64,000 nucleotides of DNA from Hamiltosporidium tvaerminnensis FI-OER-3-3 (lineage: Eukaryota > Fungi > Microsporidia), in assembly GCA_022605425.2 (NCBI GenBank), contig CM061247.1:310001-374000 (forward strand), given 5' to 3'. Every line of letters starts with the position of its first letter. The stretch's first letter is position 1. Shown here in pieces: positions 38,163-57,910 of the stretch. A program made the position numbers and the translations under genes. The notes under the pieces were generated by a model, which was not told where the DNA came from, did no database searches, and saw only the letters and a list, made by a program, of their open reading frames with translations.

Positions 38163-41083
38163 TATGTTAAAAAAACAGGCACTGAAAAACAAAAAAATAA
38201 TAAATTAAAAGGCCGCAGAGACGCTTATGAGCCGAAAAGGTAAAAATTTAGTGAAAGATAGTTATGAAAATTCTAGTGAATTTCCTGCCTTCCTCATCCT
38301 ATACACAAATAACACATCATCTATCAATCCAAACGTGCAAAAACACACAAGCTGTTAGATTGCCCTCATACCTTCGCTTTATACATGACCTTCTTCTAGG
38401 TTAATGTCTCTGCGCACGGGGATTGTACAAAATAGACATTTCCTTACTATAGATATTGCTGAAGGCAACCGGCTATGGCACTGCAGACAATTCTTGATTA
38501 TGTAGCAGACACCCCCAAAAATGAACTCGAATTGTTTTTTTTTGTAGCAGAGTCAAGGTTTGGGACGTTGTCACAAATTAGCTGAACAGGGTTGCAAGGT
38601 GCTACAATGAGAAATTCGGTCGAGTTATAAATTTCGATGTGTTTAAAAGCCAGAACAAATTTAGCGGAAAGAAAGTAGAGTTAGTAGAAAATCGAAAACG
38701 ACTTATAATCGCTTATTTTCTAATTTAATTATCTTCCTGGCCAAGATAAACCAGTAAATACACTGAGGAGATATGTTTTGAATAAAATTTAAGAAATTGA
38801 AAAGGAATTGATTTGAATTCGAAGAAACTCAACTAAATTGCATAACAGCACTGCTCTTGAATTTATTAATCGAATAGTCAGTATGTTTACCGAATCCCAT
38901 GTATCAAAGTCTATTACAGACACCAATCACGTCATAGAAGCTGCGCGGTTATGTTATGAATAATTCTTGTTTAATAAAGAGTCTAGATCCGCTTTAAAGA
39001 CAAATATAGACAGTTAAATTTCTGAGTGAGTAATTACTTAGAAACATCCTGAAACCCATAGGCAGAAAAACATTTTCTTTCATTCAAAAAAAATGTCTTA
39101 AGAAACCGGTTTGGAATTTAATTTGAATTTGAGTATAAAGAGGATTTTCTGCTGTTTTACTTAAGAAAAGGGGTTTTCGAAAGTTCACAGCAAAGGATCT
39201 TACGATAATGAAAGTATGAAGTCTTTCCGAAAGTATAATCATATGTTTAGACTTTCTAAGATAGCTTTTATCGGTGGCCATTCCCTAATATTGCATTTAA
39301 GAGTATGGCTAATCGTGTTGAAACCAAAGTTTATGATATTCAGTATTGAAAAAAGGATAGCATAATCAAATATCATGATTTTTTGATTCGGTGTGTATCG
39401 GATAATCATCCAAACGAGTTTTATTAGCTTTATGTATTTTTTGTAATCAAGTATCTACAATTTTTCTAATAAAAGTTATGACTCTCAACAAATATATTTA
39501 TGATATTATAAAAGTAAGATGCATAGAAGGTACATCCATAGCTGATTGGTTTTGGTGAGGCTTATATACTTGATCTCGTATGAACTTCACCAAGAGGCAC
39601 TGGCTTCAGGCCAGTCGCCTAAAAGCATATCCCTATATGTTAACGACGAGTTATAGAACAAAAGTCGTTCAACTTGGGGTGGAAAGACAGATTTTAGCAT
39701 TATAGTCTGTTAGAAACAATGAGAAATGAGCAAGGAACCAAAAAAAACCTTATTGAATAAAGTTCTTAATATAGAGTACATAAACATTTTTTTGACAACC
39801 TGGAATGATATTGAAACGCTTATGATATAATATATTACGCTGAGAATTCAATCTAACGAAAATCTGCATTACCTGATTGAATCTAGAATCTAGCAAGGTA
39901 AAAATATCAAAATCGAAAATTAATTTTTCATTATGATCAGAAAAAAGCATGAACAAAAAAATCGAGAGAGACATACTACCAGGAGATATCTTCTATCTTT
40001 TGCTTTTTATGTTGTGTATTGATTCTTTCCACCGAAGTTTCGATACAAATAATGGAGTTTGTTTCACACCAATCATCCCTTGTTCATTAATAGCATAGCT
40101 TCATTGCGCTGACAGTTAGAAATTAGTAGCTTTGACAGGTAGGTAAATTTTTGTAACTCTTCGATTTGGAAATAAAAAAAGAGTATTAACAGCAAATTAT
40201 ACGTGTTATCGTGTTACTACTACCCTTCCATAAGATGCTAGTGGTTATACATATTTGGAGGTAGTATGAGATAGCATTGGTAATCCAACACGTAGCTCAT
40301 TTAATAAACACTTAAAAATGTCAATAAGAGTTAAAAACTGTGTGGGACTTGATTCGAAGTAAAAAATTATTTGTTATAATTAATCAAAATGCGATATTTC
40401 TAATAAACTACTGTATAGGAATAGTATAACTTTGGTCAGGTGATTTTTCAAAATTAGATGATGTAGAGCGTGCGGTATTCGTATAATCAGAGCGAGTTTT
40501 CGTTTAGGATGCAATGAGTGATTTTACTTTTCTAGATTTTAATTTATCAAAAGTTTTCATGGTTCTGAACTAAAAAATAACCTATGCTTTTACAACTCGT
40601 GGGAGTCATTGAAAAAGGTAAAGAAACGCTAAAGCGGAGTGCAATATTTCTCAATATATAAAATACATATTGAACCTATTCTGCACCAATAATGGGTTTT
40701 CTAAAAATAAAATATAAGCTAGAAGAAGAATTCAGCAAAGATAACTCAGAAGAGGTTAAATATAGTAATTTATACAACGAAAACAATAAGGTAAATACAA
40801 GTGAAGTTATATGAATAAATATCGATGACTATGAGTATGTAATTTTTAGAGATGGCTAAATAAGGAATTCATCGAGTAAGCCGAAGAAACAATTTTTGCT
40901 ACATTTATAATATCAACGTATTTCTAGAATCAAAATGAATTTTAGTATGGTTTTGACCTTTTAAAACGGAGAACATATAGATATTCGATGTTAACAAATG
41001 CTAGAACATATAAAAGCCTCAAAATGAATTTATATATCTATATACATTCCTATATTTGTCATAAATATATATTCAAATGTATA
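38163..41083 (+). mobile_element. Older near-full-length decayed R4/Dong-type copy (continues 44172-44295 after the RTE insertion)
   Basis: Colinear with 23688-26700, e.g. tacaatgagaaattcgg, gataatcatcc, gctgattggttt, aaagtcgttcaactt and ccaacacgtagctcattt. Confidence 0.8.
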
Positions 41084-44000
41084 CTTACTTAATCCACAGC
41101 GCTTGTTCTTGAAGAGCCGGGTCTTCCTTACGATATTTCTTTATTCTTCCATATTTTGCACACAATTTCTCCATCGCCACCCATAGAGTCCCTTTAATCC
41201 TTCTCGACATTATTCAGCTATCTTTTCAGCGGTCTGCTCTTCTCTTACCTTCAGGTATGATTTTGTATATATTACTAAAAGCTTCTCTTTAGAAATTCTT
41301 ACTATGTGTCCGAGCTACCCGTGTTTTCTTTATTTTATTAGAGTGAAAATATTGGATTTTTACTATAGATTATAAATCTCTTGATTGGTTCTAATTCTCT
41401 GCAGTTATTTTCGAAAATTAGTCCATATATTCTTCTTAGTATCATTCTCATCCATCTATTTAAGCATGTTTAAATATATTTTAATCATCACTAATGTTTC
41501 GAAATATTACATTACAATAGGCCTAATAACAGTCTTATATAATTGTTTTTTTGTCGTCTGCTTCATCAGGTTAGACTTCAGTAAGCTTTGTGGCGAGAAA
41601 TAAGTTTTTTACTTGCCTTTATTATCTTCTTTGTTTTAAGTGAAATTTTATTATTCACTCAGAAATGTACCTAGGTATTTAAAACTTGATACATTTTCAA
41701 ATATAAAGGCATCTATTAAAAATTCTTCGAAATGGTCATGAGATTCAGATACTTTCTAAACTTCGTTATATTTTCAGTTCTCTTTAGTTCTGTTTTTTTT
41801 CTGATTCCGCCGCTAAAATTTTAAGAAAAATTTTAAATCCTCTGTTTTTTCCAACAATAGCCATGTCATCTGGAAATGGAACATATTGCGTTATTTCATT
41901 AAATATTTTGCCACCGGTATTTATACCTATCCAGCGGATTATTCCTTTTAGTTTTAGTTGAATAAAATAAAATGCAGGATAACGGGCCTTTTACTTTAAT
42001 CCTTTATTAATATCAAATCATTTCGATATATTACCCGTCAAATAGATTGTTCCTTTTGTATCATTGGGTGTCATTTTAATTAGTGGAATATTTTTTGATA
42101 GGATTTGTAAATTTTCGAGTGTCTTATATAGAAAATCCCGATCAATGCTATCATATGCTTTTTTGTAATCTTTTAAAAAATAATGCATCAAATATTGTAT
42201 TCATAACATTTTTAAATCATCATTCTTATCGTGAATATTTGTTCAGTTGTTGATGTACCTCTTCAAAATCCACATGGATAGTCACCAATAGTATTTTCTC
42301 ATAAGGCTATAATCTGCTAGAAATTATTCGTGTTAGAACTTCGTATCCAATGTATAGAAGAGAATTCCTCTATGGTTAATACACCGTGTTTTTAATCCAT
42401 TTTACAAATAGAGAGTAACAAGCCAAGATTAAATTCGCTGGATATTTTTTCTTGAGGGTAAATTATCTTGATTAAGATACGATGAGTATCTCTCGAAGAA
42501 TAGCCTCTAAATTTTAAGACCTCGCTGTGATCTTGTCTTCTCTAGACGCTCTATTAGTTTTTAGGCTCATGATGGCTTCGCTTATCTCAAGTAATGATGC
42601 TTCTGGGATATCGATTTATTACCATCCACTAATTCATCATTTATTTTTACGAAATAATCTATTATTCGATCTTCTGGATTATCCTGCATTAATGTGTTGC
42701 GATGGTTTCAAACTATTCGGCCTATCTATTTAAGACCTTCTTAGGATCGGTCAGCAAGCATTCGTTAAAATTTTCGGCCATGTGAAATCGAGCTTGAAAA
42801 CCTTTTTTCTCATTTCATATATTTCACGGATCTTTTTCTCCGCCATTTTTTCAATTTCGTTCAATTAAGCGTCTTCGCTAATCTTCTTCTTTTCTCTTAA
42901 AATATGCGGGGCTTGTTTTCTTTCCTGACTAAATTTTTGCATGGTTATCTCAGTTTTTTCATTTAGCATCTTTAACCTGGCCAAGTTTCTTAGGTTAATT
43001 AGCTTTTCACACTCTTGACTAAACCATGGGTCCTTTTTCTCAAGTTTCTTATAGCCTAAAACCTCCTCTGCCGTCTTTTGAATGCATTATTTTAAAAGAT
43101 TCCAAAACTTCTCTACTTTCTCTCATATTTAAAGTTTATCTTTGCACAAATTATTTTTCATTATATTAAGAAAATCTTCTCTGTATTTATATCATACAAT
43201 TTATCGCAGTCAAATCATTGAGACTTGGGATTTTTAATAATCTTCAGTATGACTATACACTGTCTATATTTCATCATTACCAAGAAATGATCGGCATCTA
43301 TATCGGCGCTTCGCGAGTTTTGCACATTCATTACACTTGAACCATATCTAGAATTTATGAGGAAATGATCAGTTTCGTTGGAAGTCGCTCTATCAGGTGC
43401 GCGCCGGGTGTATTTATGTATTTTCTTATCGGAGAAGAAGCTGCTGGACACATTCATACCTTTGCATACCTTTGAATCAATCATTCTTCTACTATTATTA
43501 TTAAATTCTAGATGAATACTATTTCTTCCGATTGTAGGTCGGTAGTGTATTTCTTTTCCTATTTTCGCATTAAAACCCCCAACAGCAATTTTAATATCAT
43601 AGTCTGGCGATTTATTATATGTATCTTTTAAAACAAGGTAGAATTTGTCCTTTTCCTTTTCGTTTGCATCTTCTATGGGAGCTTGCAGGCATGTTAACGT
43701 AGAGTTGAAAAATTGAACCTGTATGTTTGATGAGCATTGTCGTCCATTCATTGATTTGATTCTAAAATCCTATTCAACAAGTCATTTTAAACTGAAAAAG
43801 CTGTCCTAAAAGTATAGGTTGTATTCTCACCATAAATTACTGTGTATTCCTTAGTTTTTTAAACATCGGTTTCATTCCATCTTATTTTTTGTAGATCCAC
43901 AATGTTCATAATATATTTTCCAAATTCCGTGGTGATTGGCTAGTGCACGGCTCGGAAAAGGCGGCGCACATTCCAAGTTCCAATTTTATTTCTATGCTTG

Positions 44001-44171
44001 TTTTTGTTTTTACTTTTGTTGAGAAAATCAGTTTTGTTTATTATGTAGTTTCGTTTTGGTTTTGTGACAATATATTTTTGCAAGATAGGGTCGTTGGCTT
44101 ATGCTCACCTTTACTCCTTTTTCCGGGATTGGGACCGGCAGATAGCCGCAAGCCAAAGCTCTGGCTGAGTT
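41084..44171 (-). mobile_element. Full-length decayed RTE-clade LINE (APE endonuclease + RT)
   Basis: APE ORF 43215-43751 (GGFNAKIG, NETDHFLI, DADHFLV), RT DYKKAYDSIDR (~42140), FPDDMAI (~41870), SFKYLG (~41680) and a (TAAG) tail. TSD core attcaaatgtata at 41071-41083 and 44174-44186. Confidence 0.9.
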
Positions 44172-44172
44172 A
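44108..44172 (-). ncRNA. Twister ribozyme (with P3 insertion), probably inactivated, at the RTE 5' end
   Basis: Minus strand T|AACTCAGCC-[AGAGCTTTGGCTTGCGGCTATC]-TGCCGGTCCCAATCCCGGAAAAAGGAGTAAAGG, versus the eukaryotic twister pattern U|AACUCCGCC..UGCCGGUCCCAAGCCCGGRUAAAGGAGGAGGG. Confidence 0.75.
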
Positions 44173-44298
44173 AATTCAAATGTATAAAACAAAAATAAAG
44201 TACTCTTTTTGTTAAAGTCCGAGTAAATGTTTAGCAAATAATATCAAATATGAAAATAAAACCAATGTGTAAATTCGAAATTATCAATAAAATTTTCG

Positions 44299-47200
44299 CT
44301 AATAAATTTCCGAATTACTATGTTTTTTGGGTTTTATGCTTTTTTGGAACCTTTTTATCCCTACCGTTTCTTCTTCTAAATCCAATTCTTCACTTATGTT
44401 TATCATCGGTTCCCCATACATAGTTCTTCCTGTTATAACAAGGGGTATATTTTTAGTTTTTAAATGTTTAACACATTCTTCGTCATTGCTGGCTTGTTTT
44501 AGAGGAAGTGTTGGCTCCTCATGCATTTCGGCTCTCTTAAATACACCCACTGACGCATTTCCCCAGCTCTCTTTGGCCTTTAATTCCGATTCAACTTCAC
44601 TTCGTCAATCAGATAAAAAAAATTTTCGACTGATTTCTTTGTTCTATCGAGCTTATGTATGCCTTTATATTTTAAAGTATTTGCAGTCTGTTTGGGTCTA
44701 CTTATGGTATTGTGTCACACTACCCTTCCAAGTCATATCAGACAAAATATCTTAACACCGCACTTATAAATGAGCTCTAAATATTATCTAGCAAGTCATA
44801 CTTCAAAAGTTTTTTAGCTTATACTACCTTAAGTCAATTCTGGAAAGTAATTCCTACTTTAATAAGTGTTTGCTCATTCTTCTTCTTATCAAGAATAATT
44901 TATATGTCGTGTCTGAAATTCAAAATCTTGACATCGGTTTTTATTCTGGTATTATTTTTATTTCGCATGCTCGTTTAAGAATTTCGTATACTAAACGGCT
45001 CGAATACGTTTTGAAGATTTAAATTAAATTTTTTGGGAGAGGTAAGTGTAGGTATCGCACCACGTAATTATGCCGCCTGGCGTAGTCATGACCTAGAATT
45101 TTTTACCATTAAGTTGCTAGATGGTCTAGTGTATTCTATATTTTATTACAGTGTAGCACATACTATCTGCTCCCCCAGAATACATTTCTATCTTGGGTAT
45201 GGCAGGACACTTCTTGATCGAGCGCCCCCCAATTTTCCCTTACTTTGGCCACCCAGAAGAGTCACTAACACGCAAAAGCTCATTATTTCTTACATTATAT
45301 AACTTTGAGTGAAGTTTTCGTTTATCTATTTCGTAATATAGTTTTTCGAGTTGAGCTTCTTCAAAATTTTTCAAAGTTAATTCTTCTTAACCTATACTTT
45401 ACTTCTAAGGTGCCTTTTATTAGTGCAAGATGGGTTTTATTAGTATTTTTGACCTTTAGAATTGCTGCCCATCTACTTCATAGTTCTTTATTTCTTTCTA
45501 CACAGCCTAAGAGTTGGAAAAGCATATGTTTGTGTCGCAGCTCGACACCAAGTAAATCTCTTCCGATTTCTAACATGAAGTATAACTGCGCTTTATACCT
45601 TTCACTAAGATAGATTTTGCTCTTTAAAAAAAACTACAAGCACTGCTTCATCACACTTAGAGAAGTCAGACGATTCAGATCGAAGTTCTTTTATGTGATA
45701 GTTGATCAACGATTTTACATTTTGATTAATTGCAAAAAATAATTTTTTTGAATTATTTTGTGTGGCAAAGTCTTTTACCTCTTGATATCAGTTTAAAATG
45801 TACATCTTTGAGAGACTTTCTTTAGGAAATTTCTCTGCTATTCTCTCTATTCCAAGGTATTTATAAACACATATTCCTTCAAGGAAATTGCAGTGCCTTC
45901 ACAGCATGGATTATTCGTCGCTGACTTCTCTTTGTATAATTTACCCCTATATTGCGCATAAATTTCATCATATCTTCCGTCATCTATTACAAGACTCGTC
46001 TATCTTTGGCAAATAGCTTATGATCATCAATAAACAAGAAGTGATTAGTAAGTGAATTTTTCCTCTGTTTGTATTTTCACTTTTGTGTATTTCTCATTAA
46101 GCTTTCTGCTCAATAGATCCATACACAACACAAACAACGAGGGTGACATACTATCTCCTTGCAGAATCTCTCTATCAATCTTCTTGCTCAAGGTTTTTTC
46201 AGGCCTTACTGATATATAAATATTTAATTTTGATATAAATACCCTAATAAAGTTTAAGACCCAATCAGGGTAATCAAGGTTTTCGACATATTAAGTCAAA
46301 TAAGCTTGGTTTATTGAATCATAAGCTTTTTGACACTAGTTCATGTCGTCTTAAGATTGTTTCTGTGCTCTTTATTAATGGAAAAATTCAATAGAGCCTG
46401 TTCTTTCGCTCCTTGCACCTCTCATACCGCTTTTAACTGATTATTTGAAAGTAACTCACGTTTTTCAAACTCAGGCTCTACCACTTTAACAAAATATTTT
46501 TTGTCAGTTTGTACATGTTTAACATACAGGTTATTAGTCGGTAATCAGAACCAGTCCTTGGTGTACCTTTAAATATTAGATAGGTTAGTTCACAATAATA
46601 CCAGCCAGCTTGAGGCGTTTCTTCTAAACATATGACTTTCACATTATCGTAAAGATATTTAAAGATTCTAATTTTTTTATGTAAAGGTTATAAATACTAT
46701 CACTTTCAGCGGCTTTCCAGTTAGGCAGCTAACTAATGATAACTACATAGCCTTGATTTGGATTAAACGTGGGGTGCTGCATACTGCCAGAAAGGTATCA
46801 AATAGTCCTTATACGCAACCTTATTGTTTTTGTTCCACATTTTAGACCAAAATTATGAAATTTAATCACGACTAATCAAATGCTCGGATTCAACGCGCTC
46901 AGATAACCCACGATAGAATCGATCTCGCAATAACTCAAACATACGATTCCCTTTTCCTAATTGCTTTCTACTCTTATACATCGTAATTCTTTTCTCGTTA
47001 AATTCAAAGCCTCAGAAAGATTATTTGTTTTGCTTAAGTCCAATTAAACTCTTGCATAATTTTTCCGAAACTTTTTTTTGAGAAGAAGAGACTTTTTCCT
47101 GCCTAACAGTTTTTTCTAGAAGATCTATGAAACATAATATTTTAGAAATTTTACTTTCTATACTTTCCTTCCAAGTAAATCTAGGTTTAACCTTACTTGT

Positions 47201-56184: not shown

Positions 56185-57910
56185 CGGAAATATTTTTATG
56201 ATATTGTGAAAGTACTATGTTTAGAACGTATACCTCGGATGTATTGATTCTACTGCTGGCGTAAATATTTTAATTTAATAAGAATTACTACAAGGAGTCC
56301 CTAAATAAAGACAATTATTTGAATTTTTATCATCTGAAAGTAAACGACAAGCTATGTGGCAAAAATTGTTCTTCCAAGTGAAAAGAAAGTGTGATTTTAT
56401 AAATAATATTTAATACTCTCAGAAGCGTGCAGAATGCAAATTCAACTAATGTGATAAATTTCTTGAATATGAACATAGAAAAAATATTTACGCTACCAAA
56501 ATTAATTTCGAATGAGAATGGGCTAGTAGTCATGCGTTTTAAAGCAATCCATTATTTCTTGATTTATCTACTCTGAGATTGAAATTTATCAAGATACTAT
56601 ATCAAAAAAAGTCAATATTTACATAGAGCTTAAAAAATCATAAGTACGGGAAATATGAAAGTAATATTTACGGTAATATTTTGTAACGTTTTCTCAGTAG
56701 ACTAAGTATAGATCGGTTCGGCGCAAACTTATGAGAAGTTCATAACATTTACAATATAGACAAATGCTATTTTTATACTAATAATCATAGCTTGTTATTG
56801 CATGTTCTAAGTTATTTGGCTTAGACACGTTGAAAATTGAAATCTTTTCCAGGAAAGGTGAATTTTTAGAAATCATTGATTTATAATCAATGAACGCTTA
56901 TTTAATTACTATGATACATGGTGCGAAGATACTGCTACTTTTCTAGAAAATATTAGTGGTTATAAATATTTGAGAAAATTTGGAGATAGCAAAGAAAATC
57001 AAACACGTAGCTCATCTGAATAAATACAGACATGACTAATAACAAGAGTGCAGAACTTTGTTACACTAGACTAGATGCAACCAAATTATATTATGCAATA
57101 AATCAACATGCGAAATTGTCAATCATTTATCATATAGGAGTAGTAAAACATAAACGACCAGCTTCTCCGAGTTAGATGATACAGTTAGTGCTGTGTTAGT
57201 AAAGAATAAGGTAGATCTCAATGCAGGATTAAAGAGCGTCTATGTCTGTCGTTAATAGAACTTCGAAGGGGGTCTTAAAAATATTGAGTTCAGAGTGAAC
57301 ATATTCTTCTGCAACTCTGGTATGTCTGGGAATAATTAAAAAACAATAAAATCGAAAAGCATCAATCCTAAAGCAGAAAAACACAAATAAAACTAAGTTA
57401 GCACATAAAAAAGGCCTCTTAAAAATAAAATTGAAGTTTGAGGGAAAAGTTAGAAAAAAATATTAGGATGAGATTTAATTAGCAATTAATAGAATAAAAT
57501 AGAAAAGCGAAAAATTTAATTACATTATATTTTCGGGGAAAAAAAATCGAGGATGAATAGTATTTTTTCTGGAAGTCTAAAGTAAGCGAATATCAGGCAA
57601 CAAGACAAAGCACGTTTTTCTATACCAAAGATATCAATATATTCCTAGAATTAAAATAAATTTTAGCATGGTTTTGATCTTTGAACAAAAACATTTAGAT
57701 ATTCGATGTTTTAAAAATTCTTGAGCAAAAAAATCCTCAAAATGAATTTATCTATCTGTATACATTCATATACCCGTCATAAATATAAATTAAAATGTAT
57801 AAAACAAACAAAAGTACTCTTCTGGCTCAGATTTCATGAAAATCTTTTGTAAGTAATATCAAATATAAGAATAAGATCAATATGTAAATTCGAAATGATT
57901 GATAAAATAT
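56185..57910 (+). mobile_element. Decayed R4/Dong-type fragments, including the uninterrupted paralogue of the RTE insertion site
   Basis: tttatgatattgtgaaagt, gaagatactgctact and aatcaacatgcga match the young element. 57631-57910 matches 40910-41083 joined to 44187-44295. Confidence 0.75.

Follow-up and report, generated by a model that had tools for sequence, protein, structure and literature searches.

An RTE-like retrotransposon of Hamiltosporidium tvaerminnensis that begins with a probable relic of a twister ribozyme

An old and dead copy of an RTE-like non-LTR retrotransposon in the genome of the microsporidian Hamiltosporidium tvaerminnensis very probably carries the relic of a twister ribozyme as its head, and the RNA of the living element was probably freed by twister cleavage and copied to A1, its first base. 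The copy lies in a stretch of 64,000 nucleotides, hereafter the window (contig CM061247.1 of assembly GCA_022605425.2, strain FI-OER-3-3, positions 310,001 to 374,000 of the forward strand). An earlier reading of the window, made from the letters alone (the sequence-only reading), had proposed that a twister ribozyme defines the exact 5' end of this element. Elements of the RTE clade are about 3.2 kb long and have one ORF of about 1,000 aa, which encodes an AP-endonuclease followed by a reverse transcriptase and no further domains; their 3' UTR is very short and ends in short tandem repeats, and they have SINE-like derivatives with the same 3' tail.

In this paper we describe the motif, the junction positions and the duplications of the window copy, the ends that it shares with sister copies, the decay of the family and its intact relatives in environmental DNA. 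From homology and the positions of the junctions we infer that cleavage took place in H. tvaerminnensis.

Methods

The genome searched was the H. tvaerminnensis assembly of 21,638,905 bp (21.64 Mb) in 17 contigs. Twister heads were sought with the Rfam model RF03160 (twister-P1), which has a gathering score of 67.2 bits, and with a family covariance model, R1, built from 23 of the 31 matches to RF03160 in the genome. The conserved core of twister-P1 for which heads were tested consists of UAA in L1, GC in L2, GUCCCAAGC(C) in L4, UAAA, and the GAGGG of L1 that holds the catalytic G. The ancestral state was taken as the majority residue at each position of the 67-nt head only, from 24-47 copies.

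Results

The minus strand of the window reads tatacatttgaattt | AACTCAGCC, followed by 22 nt (44162-44141) and then by TGCCGGTCCCAATCCCGG AAAAA GGAG TAAAG GTGA (Table 1). At its other end the element closes with ...GATTAAGTAAG, after which the duplicated 15-mer returns with one change (41083-41069), so that the duplications at 44172-44186 and 41069-41083 match at 14 of 15 positions. At an empty paralogous site the 15-mer of the 5' duplication is present once, and in an alignment with this paralogue the upstream flank (81%) ends at 57787 and the downstream flank (78%) starts from 57801. Because the two flank alignments overlap by exactly the 15-nt duplication, the element spans 44171..41084, or 3,088 bp; its start is fixed to within 1 nt (44170 is possible) since the base following the duplication is also A. 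The interrupted site, the flanking duplication and the uninterrupted paralogue described in the sequence-only reading were therefore all recovered to the base, and the empty-site alignment of both flanks supports its placing of the first base of the element at the AAC of 44171. The bond predicted to be cut joins 44172 (U) to 44171 (A), and the U|AA of the RF03160 model falls on 44172|44171.

The flanking DNA (40684-41083 and 44172-44294) has a paralogue about 13 kb away, at 57420-57908, with 78-81% identity. The insertion therefore hit one of the copies of a segment that had already been duplicated or repeated, and this segment may itself belong to a repeat family.

Table 1. Features of the window copy and its insertion site, in positions of the window
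Feature	Position	Strand	Match
Whole element, 3,088-bp RTE-like non-LTR retrotransposon copy, ORF in many pieces	41084..44171	-	
5' target-site duplication copy, 15 bp, tatacatttgaattt on the minus strand	44172..44186	-	
3' target-site duplication copy, tatacatttgaatat	41069..41083	-	
Empty (uninterrupted) paralogous target site, tatacattttaattt	57787..57801	-	
Putative decayed twister-P1-type ribozyme head, 67 nt	44105..44171	-	RF03160
Head, L1 AA	44171-44170	-	
Head, P2 5' strand CUCA	44169-44166	-	
Head, T2 GC	44165-44164	-	
Head, P3 hairpin	44163-44140	-	
Head, P4 plus L4	44139-44123	-	
Head, AAAAA	44122-44118	-	
Head, P2 3' strand GGAG	44117-44114	-	
Head, L1 3' strand UAAAG (ancestral GAGGG)	44113-44109	-	
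Head, former P1 3' strand GUGA	44108-44105	-	
Conserved 5' untranslated stretch, common to long copies and ~195-bp minis	44030..44104	-	
Open piece with endonuclease-domain start, IGTWNVRRL motif	43940..44083	-	tblastn, L136 aa 61-114
AP-type endonuclease remnant, longest open piece, 178 aa	43215..43751	-	tblastn, L136 aa 143-314, E 2e-21
Reverse-transcriptase remnant, broken frames	41787..42200	-	weak RVT_1; tblastn, L136 aa 632-906, E 1e-10
3' tail common to minis, GCUCU...AGAGC-type hairpin remnant and degenerate (TAG)n (AAGTAAG)	41084..41134	-	

A sensitive all-Rfam scan of 501 bases (43900-44400) matched RF03160 to 44105-44176 of the minus strand at 37.3 bits (E 1.3e-6), and the same head scores 58.6 bits with R1; in an all-Rfam scan of the window at gathering thresholds, nothing passed. 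The evidence supports the view that the first 67 nt of the element are the relic of a type-P1 twister self-cleaving ribozyme. The motif can be called a twister, as the sequence-only reading had it, on the strength of this match, of a family majority with a complete core and of intact relatives that pass the gathering score. Its 22-nt "insert" corresponds to the optional P3 hairpin.

The window head deviates from the family majority at 21 of 67 positions. Two of the substitutions (AAGC>AATC and GAGGG>TAAAG) had already been listed and are real, and comparison with the majority adds two more (P2 CUCC>CUCA and AUAAA>AAAAA). The copy departs from the conserved core, with AAUC for AAGC, AAAA for UAAA and UAAAG for GAGGG. 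Pairs are kept at 3/4 in P2, 3/3 in P4, 1/2 in T2 and 1/3 in T1, and the minimum-free-energy fold of the head is no better than those of shuffled sequences (z = -0.08). The catalytic G resides in the L1 strand (Liu et al. 2021, PMC8501958), which in the window copy reads UAAAG. Because the GAGGG of L1, one T2 pair and one P2 pair are lost, the window copy is not expected to cleave, and the earlier judgement that it is dead agrees with the extent of change in its head.

The coding remnants behind the head follow the order endonuclease then RVT_1. The 178-aa endonuclease piece is 99% identical to an H. tvaerminnensis hypothetical protein with a UniRef name beginning "Endonuclease/exon...", and its Atlas neighbours carry Exo_endo_phos (score 0.97). 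Pfam gave no match on this piece, and two reverse-transcriptase pieces had weak, collinear RVT_1 matches (E 0.013-0.025; the one in the remnant at 41787..42200 covers profile positions 73-100 at E 0.024); because Pfam is absent or weak on the broken pieces, the domain assignments rest on other tools. In tblastn the element is collinear with intact environmental ORFs of 1,029-1,064 aa that carry Exo_endo_phos and RVT_1, and the Hamiltosporidium element, its ORF now broken, presumably also had a single one. Copies with defined ends are 3,044-3,108 bp long, (TAG)1-3 stands directly before the duplication, and a tail of about 55-70 nt is common to the minis described below. By its length, its domain order, the absence of extra domains, its (TAG)n end and its SINE-like offspring, the element fits the RTE clade. 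The endonuclease and reverse-transcriptase remnants bear out the earlier placing of the twister at the extreme 5' end of a non-LTR element, to which the label RTE is given by architecture.

In the window copy (41084-41092), and likewise at the 3' ends of L056, L049 and L074, the terminal (TAG)n/TAAG repeat seems to include the final in-frame stop. A 3' UTR may thus have been all but absent from the long copies, in which the frames are heavily broken; in the environmental relatives the stop is followed by about 120 nt.

As the sequence-only reading had suggested, RF03160 was also run on the whole genome, where it gave 31 matches, all below the gathering score, with a best score of 43.9 bits and E down to 1.7e-7; the gathering score was reached by no copy in the assembly. 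A genome search with R1 found at least 56 heads at E<=0.01, all from model position 1, and this number is a lower bound because 150 of the 3,119 first-look candidates were scored. Since heads with common upstream flanks are segmental duplicates, the 56 heads collapse to 47 independent insertions.

Segmental duplicates that carry the element are found at C14:69798-69864, C14:1364551-1364617 and C16:995004-995070 (and C12:2634483), and further heads share flanks at C15:526059/558417, C3:454273/519306, C12:551299/505579, C3:1089563/1132780 and C5:700844/675757. Three copies, on two contigs, are identical across head and flank.

The first base at the predicted cleavage position is A in 45 of the 47 independent heads. 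Their starting triplets include AAC (28 heads), AAT (7) and AGC (4), and the 25 nt upstream are unrelated from locus to locus. About 20 heads have duplications of 9-17 nt that end 0-3 nt from the head start or 1-2 nt into the head (for example a perfect 14-mer at L045, 13-mers at L040, L043 and L056, and those of the long copies L031 and L049); this count is restricted to cases with plausible element lengths, and the automated tail and duplication finder, which was noisy where the tail motif had decayed, missed the window copy and mis-sized several others. A mapping of the 5' junctions of sister copies had been suggested as a check on the twister, and it finds that the sisters share a start position beside unrelated flanks and duplications. 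A ribozyme-type head at the extreme 5' end and a duplication abutting the cut site are the marks of a twister-headed RTE of the Perere-3 type, and the window copy, with its empty site as control, shows both of them, as do sister copies.

These junctions bear on the question of whether the 5' end could have been set by transcription initiation or by some other RNA processing, the twister-like sequence being a structured leader only. The cleaved head could serve in translation, as that of Perere-3 supports translation of a downstream reporter (Liu et al. 2021, PMC8501958), and this, together with the indirect nature of the argument for cleavage in Hamiltosporidium, speaks for a leader. We nevertheless consider a leader role alone unlikely: in 45 of 47 insertions the element starts exactly at the known cut site, no conserved twister nucleotide is missing from the majority sequence or from the intact relatives, and the same head in S. 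mansoni cleaves both in vitro and in vivo. The upkeep of the core in master copies would also go unexplained, because there is no bond left to cut in an RNA with A1 as its first base. Processing by a twister is accordingly preferred below.

At position -1, T is present in 24 of 47 heads vs 37.5% T in the flanks (p = 0.04, a weak and uncorrected value), and this excess could come from a preferred target or from microhomology when the 5' end is joined. Flank positions -5 to -2 of the 47 heads have no clear complementarity to the UUGA that follows GAGGG. In a few minis, at C14:1286943-1287009 (L054), C8:783140 (L042) and C6:427053 (L038), the duplication and the head are separated by 1-3 additional bases or the first triplet is altered (GTC at L054). 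Such bases and triplets are compatible with untemplated additions or with imprecise 5' joining.

About half of the heads are on short elements of about 195 bp, here called minis. There are about 25 minis of 185-215 bp and about 13 long copies of 3.05-3.11 kb (the window copy, L031, L034, L036, L049, L056, L059, L062, L070, L074, L077, L078 and L080), both counts being approximate as other repeats in the flanks blur the classing by BLAST coverage. A mini consists of the first 135-150 nt of the long element, that is, the twister and the leader, followed directly by the final 55-70 nt, where a GCUCU-loop-AGAGC hairpin region is closed by (TAG)n. The minis have one deletion junction in common and different duplications, which indicates that a single deletion derivative was amplified in trans.

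The family majority carries every conserved twister position of the Rfam consensus, so that the whole core is intact in the reconstructed head. Outside P3 it is identical to the Perere-3 twisters of S. mansoni, including P2 CUCC/GGAG, and matching entries in Liu et al. 2021 (PMC8501958) are Sma-1-73 (AUAAA) and Sma-1-102 (UUGA). P2 is variable in the Rfam consensus, yet it is identical in the Hamiltosporidium majority and in Perere-3, which suggests that the element lineage brought its head with it and that there was no second recruitment.

It might be argued that the likeness to a twister is a chance similarity in AT-rich repeat DNA, since the matches in the genome are all below the gathering score and control genomes of the E. 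coli type also give sub-threshold matches at E<=10. Set against this are E-values of 1.3e-6 locally and 1.7e-7 genome-wide, an ancestral state, drawn from 24-47 copies, that fits all conserved positions, and homologous intact elements that pass the gathering score. Chance is scarcely credible as a source of the motif, and the complete majority core and the intact environmental heads refute it for practical purposes.

The 47 independent heads differ from the majority at 8-34 of 67 positions, and none at fewer than 8. Of 753 changes, 309 (41%) are C>T or G>A, and column conservation is 0.69 where the majority is G or C vs 0.78 where it is A or T. Because the G/C-majority columns are the less conserved and the changes follow this C>T/G>A pattern, the apparent conservation of the A-rich loops reflects mutation bias and not selection. 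Pairing across 23 heads is found in 75.8% of cells, vs 41-47% with slid partners. Covariation within the family heads does not exceed that of shuffled controls, which is uninformative because the copies decay neutrally; the support for the fold therefore comes from similarity to known twisters and to the environmental relatives.

The sequence-only reading had allowed that younger copies may be active. The retrotransposon family is extinct in the H. tvaerminnensis assembly, where all the heads scored have changes at 8 or more of 67 positions and an open frame was found in none of the long copies. A family still active in this genome, with a working ribozyme in its younger copies, is very improbable; the case for one is that 150 of 3,119 first-look candidates were scored, which makes the census incomplete. 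The best-scoring 47 independent heads all have at least 8 changes, the 41% share of C>T plus G>A among these changes is what neutral decay with an AT bias would leave, and all 29 genomic matches to the endonuclease piece (short fragments aside) have stops. In the long copies, which are 65-78% identical to one another, there is no ORF above 184 aa.

Intact relatives of the element are found in environmental DNA. The exact 30-nt core, including P2, is present in at least 120 metagenome contigs, and in many of these AACTCCGCC, P3 and the core are directly followed by ORFs of 986-1,064 aa; the four ORFs scanned (1,057-1,064 aa) all contain Exo_endo_phos and RVT_1 only. On RF03160 the scores of the environmental heads range over 41-68 bits; of 16 heads, 3 pass the gathering score, whereas 13 contigs with a perfect 30-nt core (loci L088-L161) fall below it at 41-66 bits. 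The gathering score thus misses most of the intact heads because P1 is not formed and P3 is long. The P3 stems of the environmental families vary in sequence and keep their pairing.

The head of L136 scores 68.1 bits, and its ORF is collinear in tblastn with the Hamiltosporidium copies, matching the window copy at E 2e-21 in the endonuclease half and at E 1e-10 in the polymerase half. This ORF has homologues of about 1,000 aa in mollusc, fish and amphioxus genomes and on contigs of about 3.3 kb, all of them listed without clade names. On a 93-kb JGI contig (L203) with a related degenerate LINE, a head was not detected, searches with filters off included.

Discussion

The findings are best accommodated by a living element that had no need of a precise promoter of its own and would have been transcribed within a longer read-through RNA. 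In this RNA the twister would fold (P2, P3, P4 and two pseudoknots) and cut between the flanking nucleotide and A1, thereby freeing an RNA that begins 5'-AAC, and target-primed reverse transcription would copy the freed RNA to its first base. Cleavage before A1 and copying to the first base would have the result that new copies start with AAC directly after the duplication. The 5' strand of P1 would be left behind at each jump and random target DNA would take its place. Because this strand is not heritable and the flanks have no clear complementarity, the ribozyme must have worked without P1, as a "truncated" twister, if the scheme is right. Function without P1 is permitted by the literature, and the Perere-3 twisters accept C, G, A or U as the nucleotide 5' of the cut (Liu et al. 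2021, PMC8501958). The mini of about 195 bp would have been mobilised in trans by the machinery of the long element.

The Schistosoma precedent invoked in the sequence-only reading is real. The head of Perere-3, an element of the RTE clade in S. mansoni, is a T-variant twister that cleaves in vitro and in vivo, and its duplications lie beside the cut site (Liu et al. 2021, PMC8501958). As in Hamiltosporidium, the twister stands at the extreme 5' end of an element with an endonuclease and a reverse transcriptase, the duplications adjoin the cut site, target DNA supplies the 5' strand of P1, and the core outside P3 is the same, including P2 CUCC/GGAG and the UUGR after GAGGG. The two differ in that the host of the Hamiltosporidium element is a microsporidian and not an animal, in the sequence of P3, and in that about half of the Hamiltosporidium heads are on deletion derivatives of about 195 bp. 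Unlike Perere-3, the Hamiltosporidium copies are all decayed and are known as sequence alone, and we claim no activity for them. De la Peña et al. 2020 (PMC7761336) state, with reference to work "in preparation", that the RTE superfamily has, conserved at its 5' ends, twisters that are "truncated but catalytically competent". Their proposal likewise has a P1-less twister at the head of an RTE that processes its 5' end out of upstream transcripts, in a review that gives neither taxa nor data.

The HDV-like ribozymes of R2, L1Tc, baggins and some RTE elements follow a similar logic: a LINE that lacks a promoter is transcribed together with the DNA before it, a ribozyme at its 5' end removes the upstream RNA, and the whole ribozyme remains on the element RNA. 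Their class and fold are unrelated to those of twisters, and they cleave right at their first nucleotide with no upstream sequence required, whereas a twister normally has an upstream P1 strand, which would be dispensable in the Hamiltosporidium element. The hammerhead-bearing satellite or SINE elements of schistosomes (PMC6765202) resemble the minis as short, non-autonomous elements with a ribozyme instead of a polymerase III-type head; the Hamiltosporidium mini differs in that it carries a twister and is a plain internal-deletion derivative of its own LINE.

The arrangement is thus already known, having been published for S. mansoni and asserted for the RTE superfamily, and its occurrence in a microsporidian is the addition. 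The case is less new than the sequence-only reading implied, because de la Peña et al. 2020 (PMC7761336) already assert twisters across RTE elements. In full-text literature searches no paper was found that links a twister, or any self-cleaving ribozyme, to a microsporidian retroelement, and a survey of microsporidian transposons that covers Hamiltosporidium mentions neither RTE nor SINE.

We lean slightly towards a lineage of twister-headed RTE elements that is old and widespread, that reached a microsporidian, perhaps horizontally from an animal host, and that there gave rise to a SINE analogue of about 195 bp with a ribozyme head and no promoter. The near identity of the head, base for base, in hosts that are very distant argues for shared descent with the element and not for repeated recruitment. 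If our interpretation is correct, microsporidia would gain their first described retroelement system with a self-cleaving ribozyme, and the mini would be a non-autonomous element with a 5' end that depends on a ribozyme and not on a polymerase III head. The partnership of twister and RTE, to our knowledge the only biological role so far proposed for eukaryotic twisters, would then extend from a flatworm to a microsporidian. The Hamiltosporidium case opens no new mechanism. It indicates that the Rfam gathering score overlooks most P1-less heads, including intact ones, and that an AAC start with an abutting duplication is a simple rule for full-length copies. The family also annotates about 50 H. 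tvaerminnensis repeats, among them a mini that standard classifiers would leave as "unknown".

Two of the environmental contigs have further features. Contig L113 has a 5S rRNA gene (100.6 bits) and a sub-threshold match to the histone 3' stem-loop, at 1483-1603 and 1092-1136, about 0.7-1.2 kb from a twister-headed element, and the two signals mark it as eukaryotic nuclear DNA. In positions 1-80 of L152 two partial twister cores stand in tandem, a core-like stretch lying directly upstream of the matched core.
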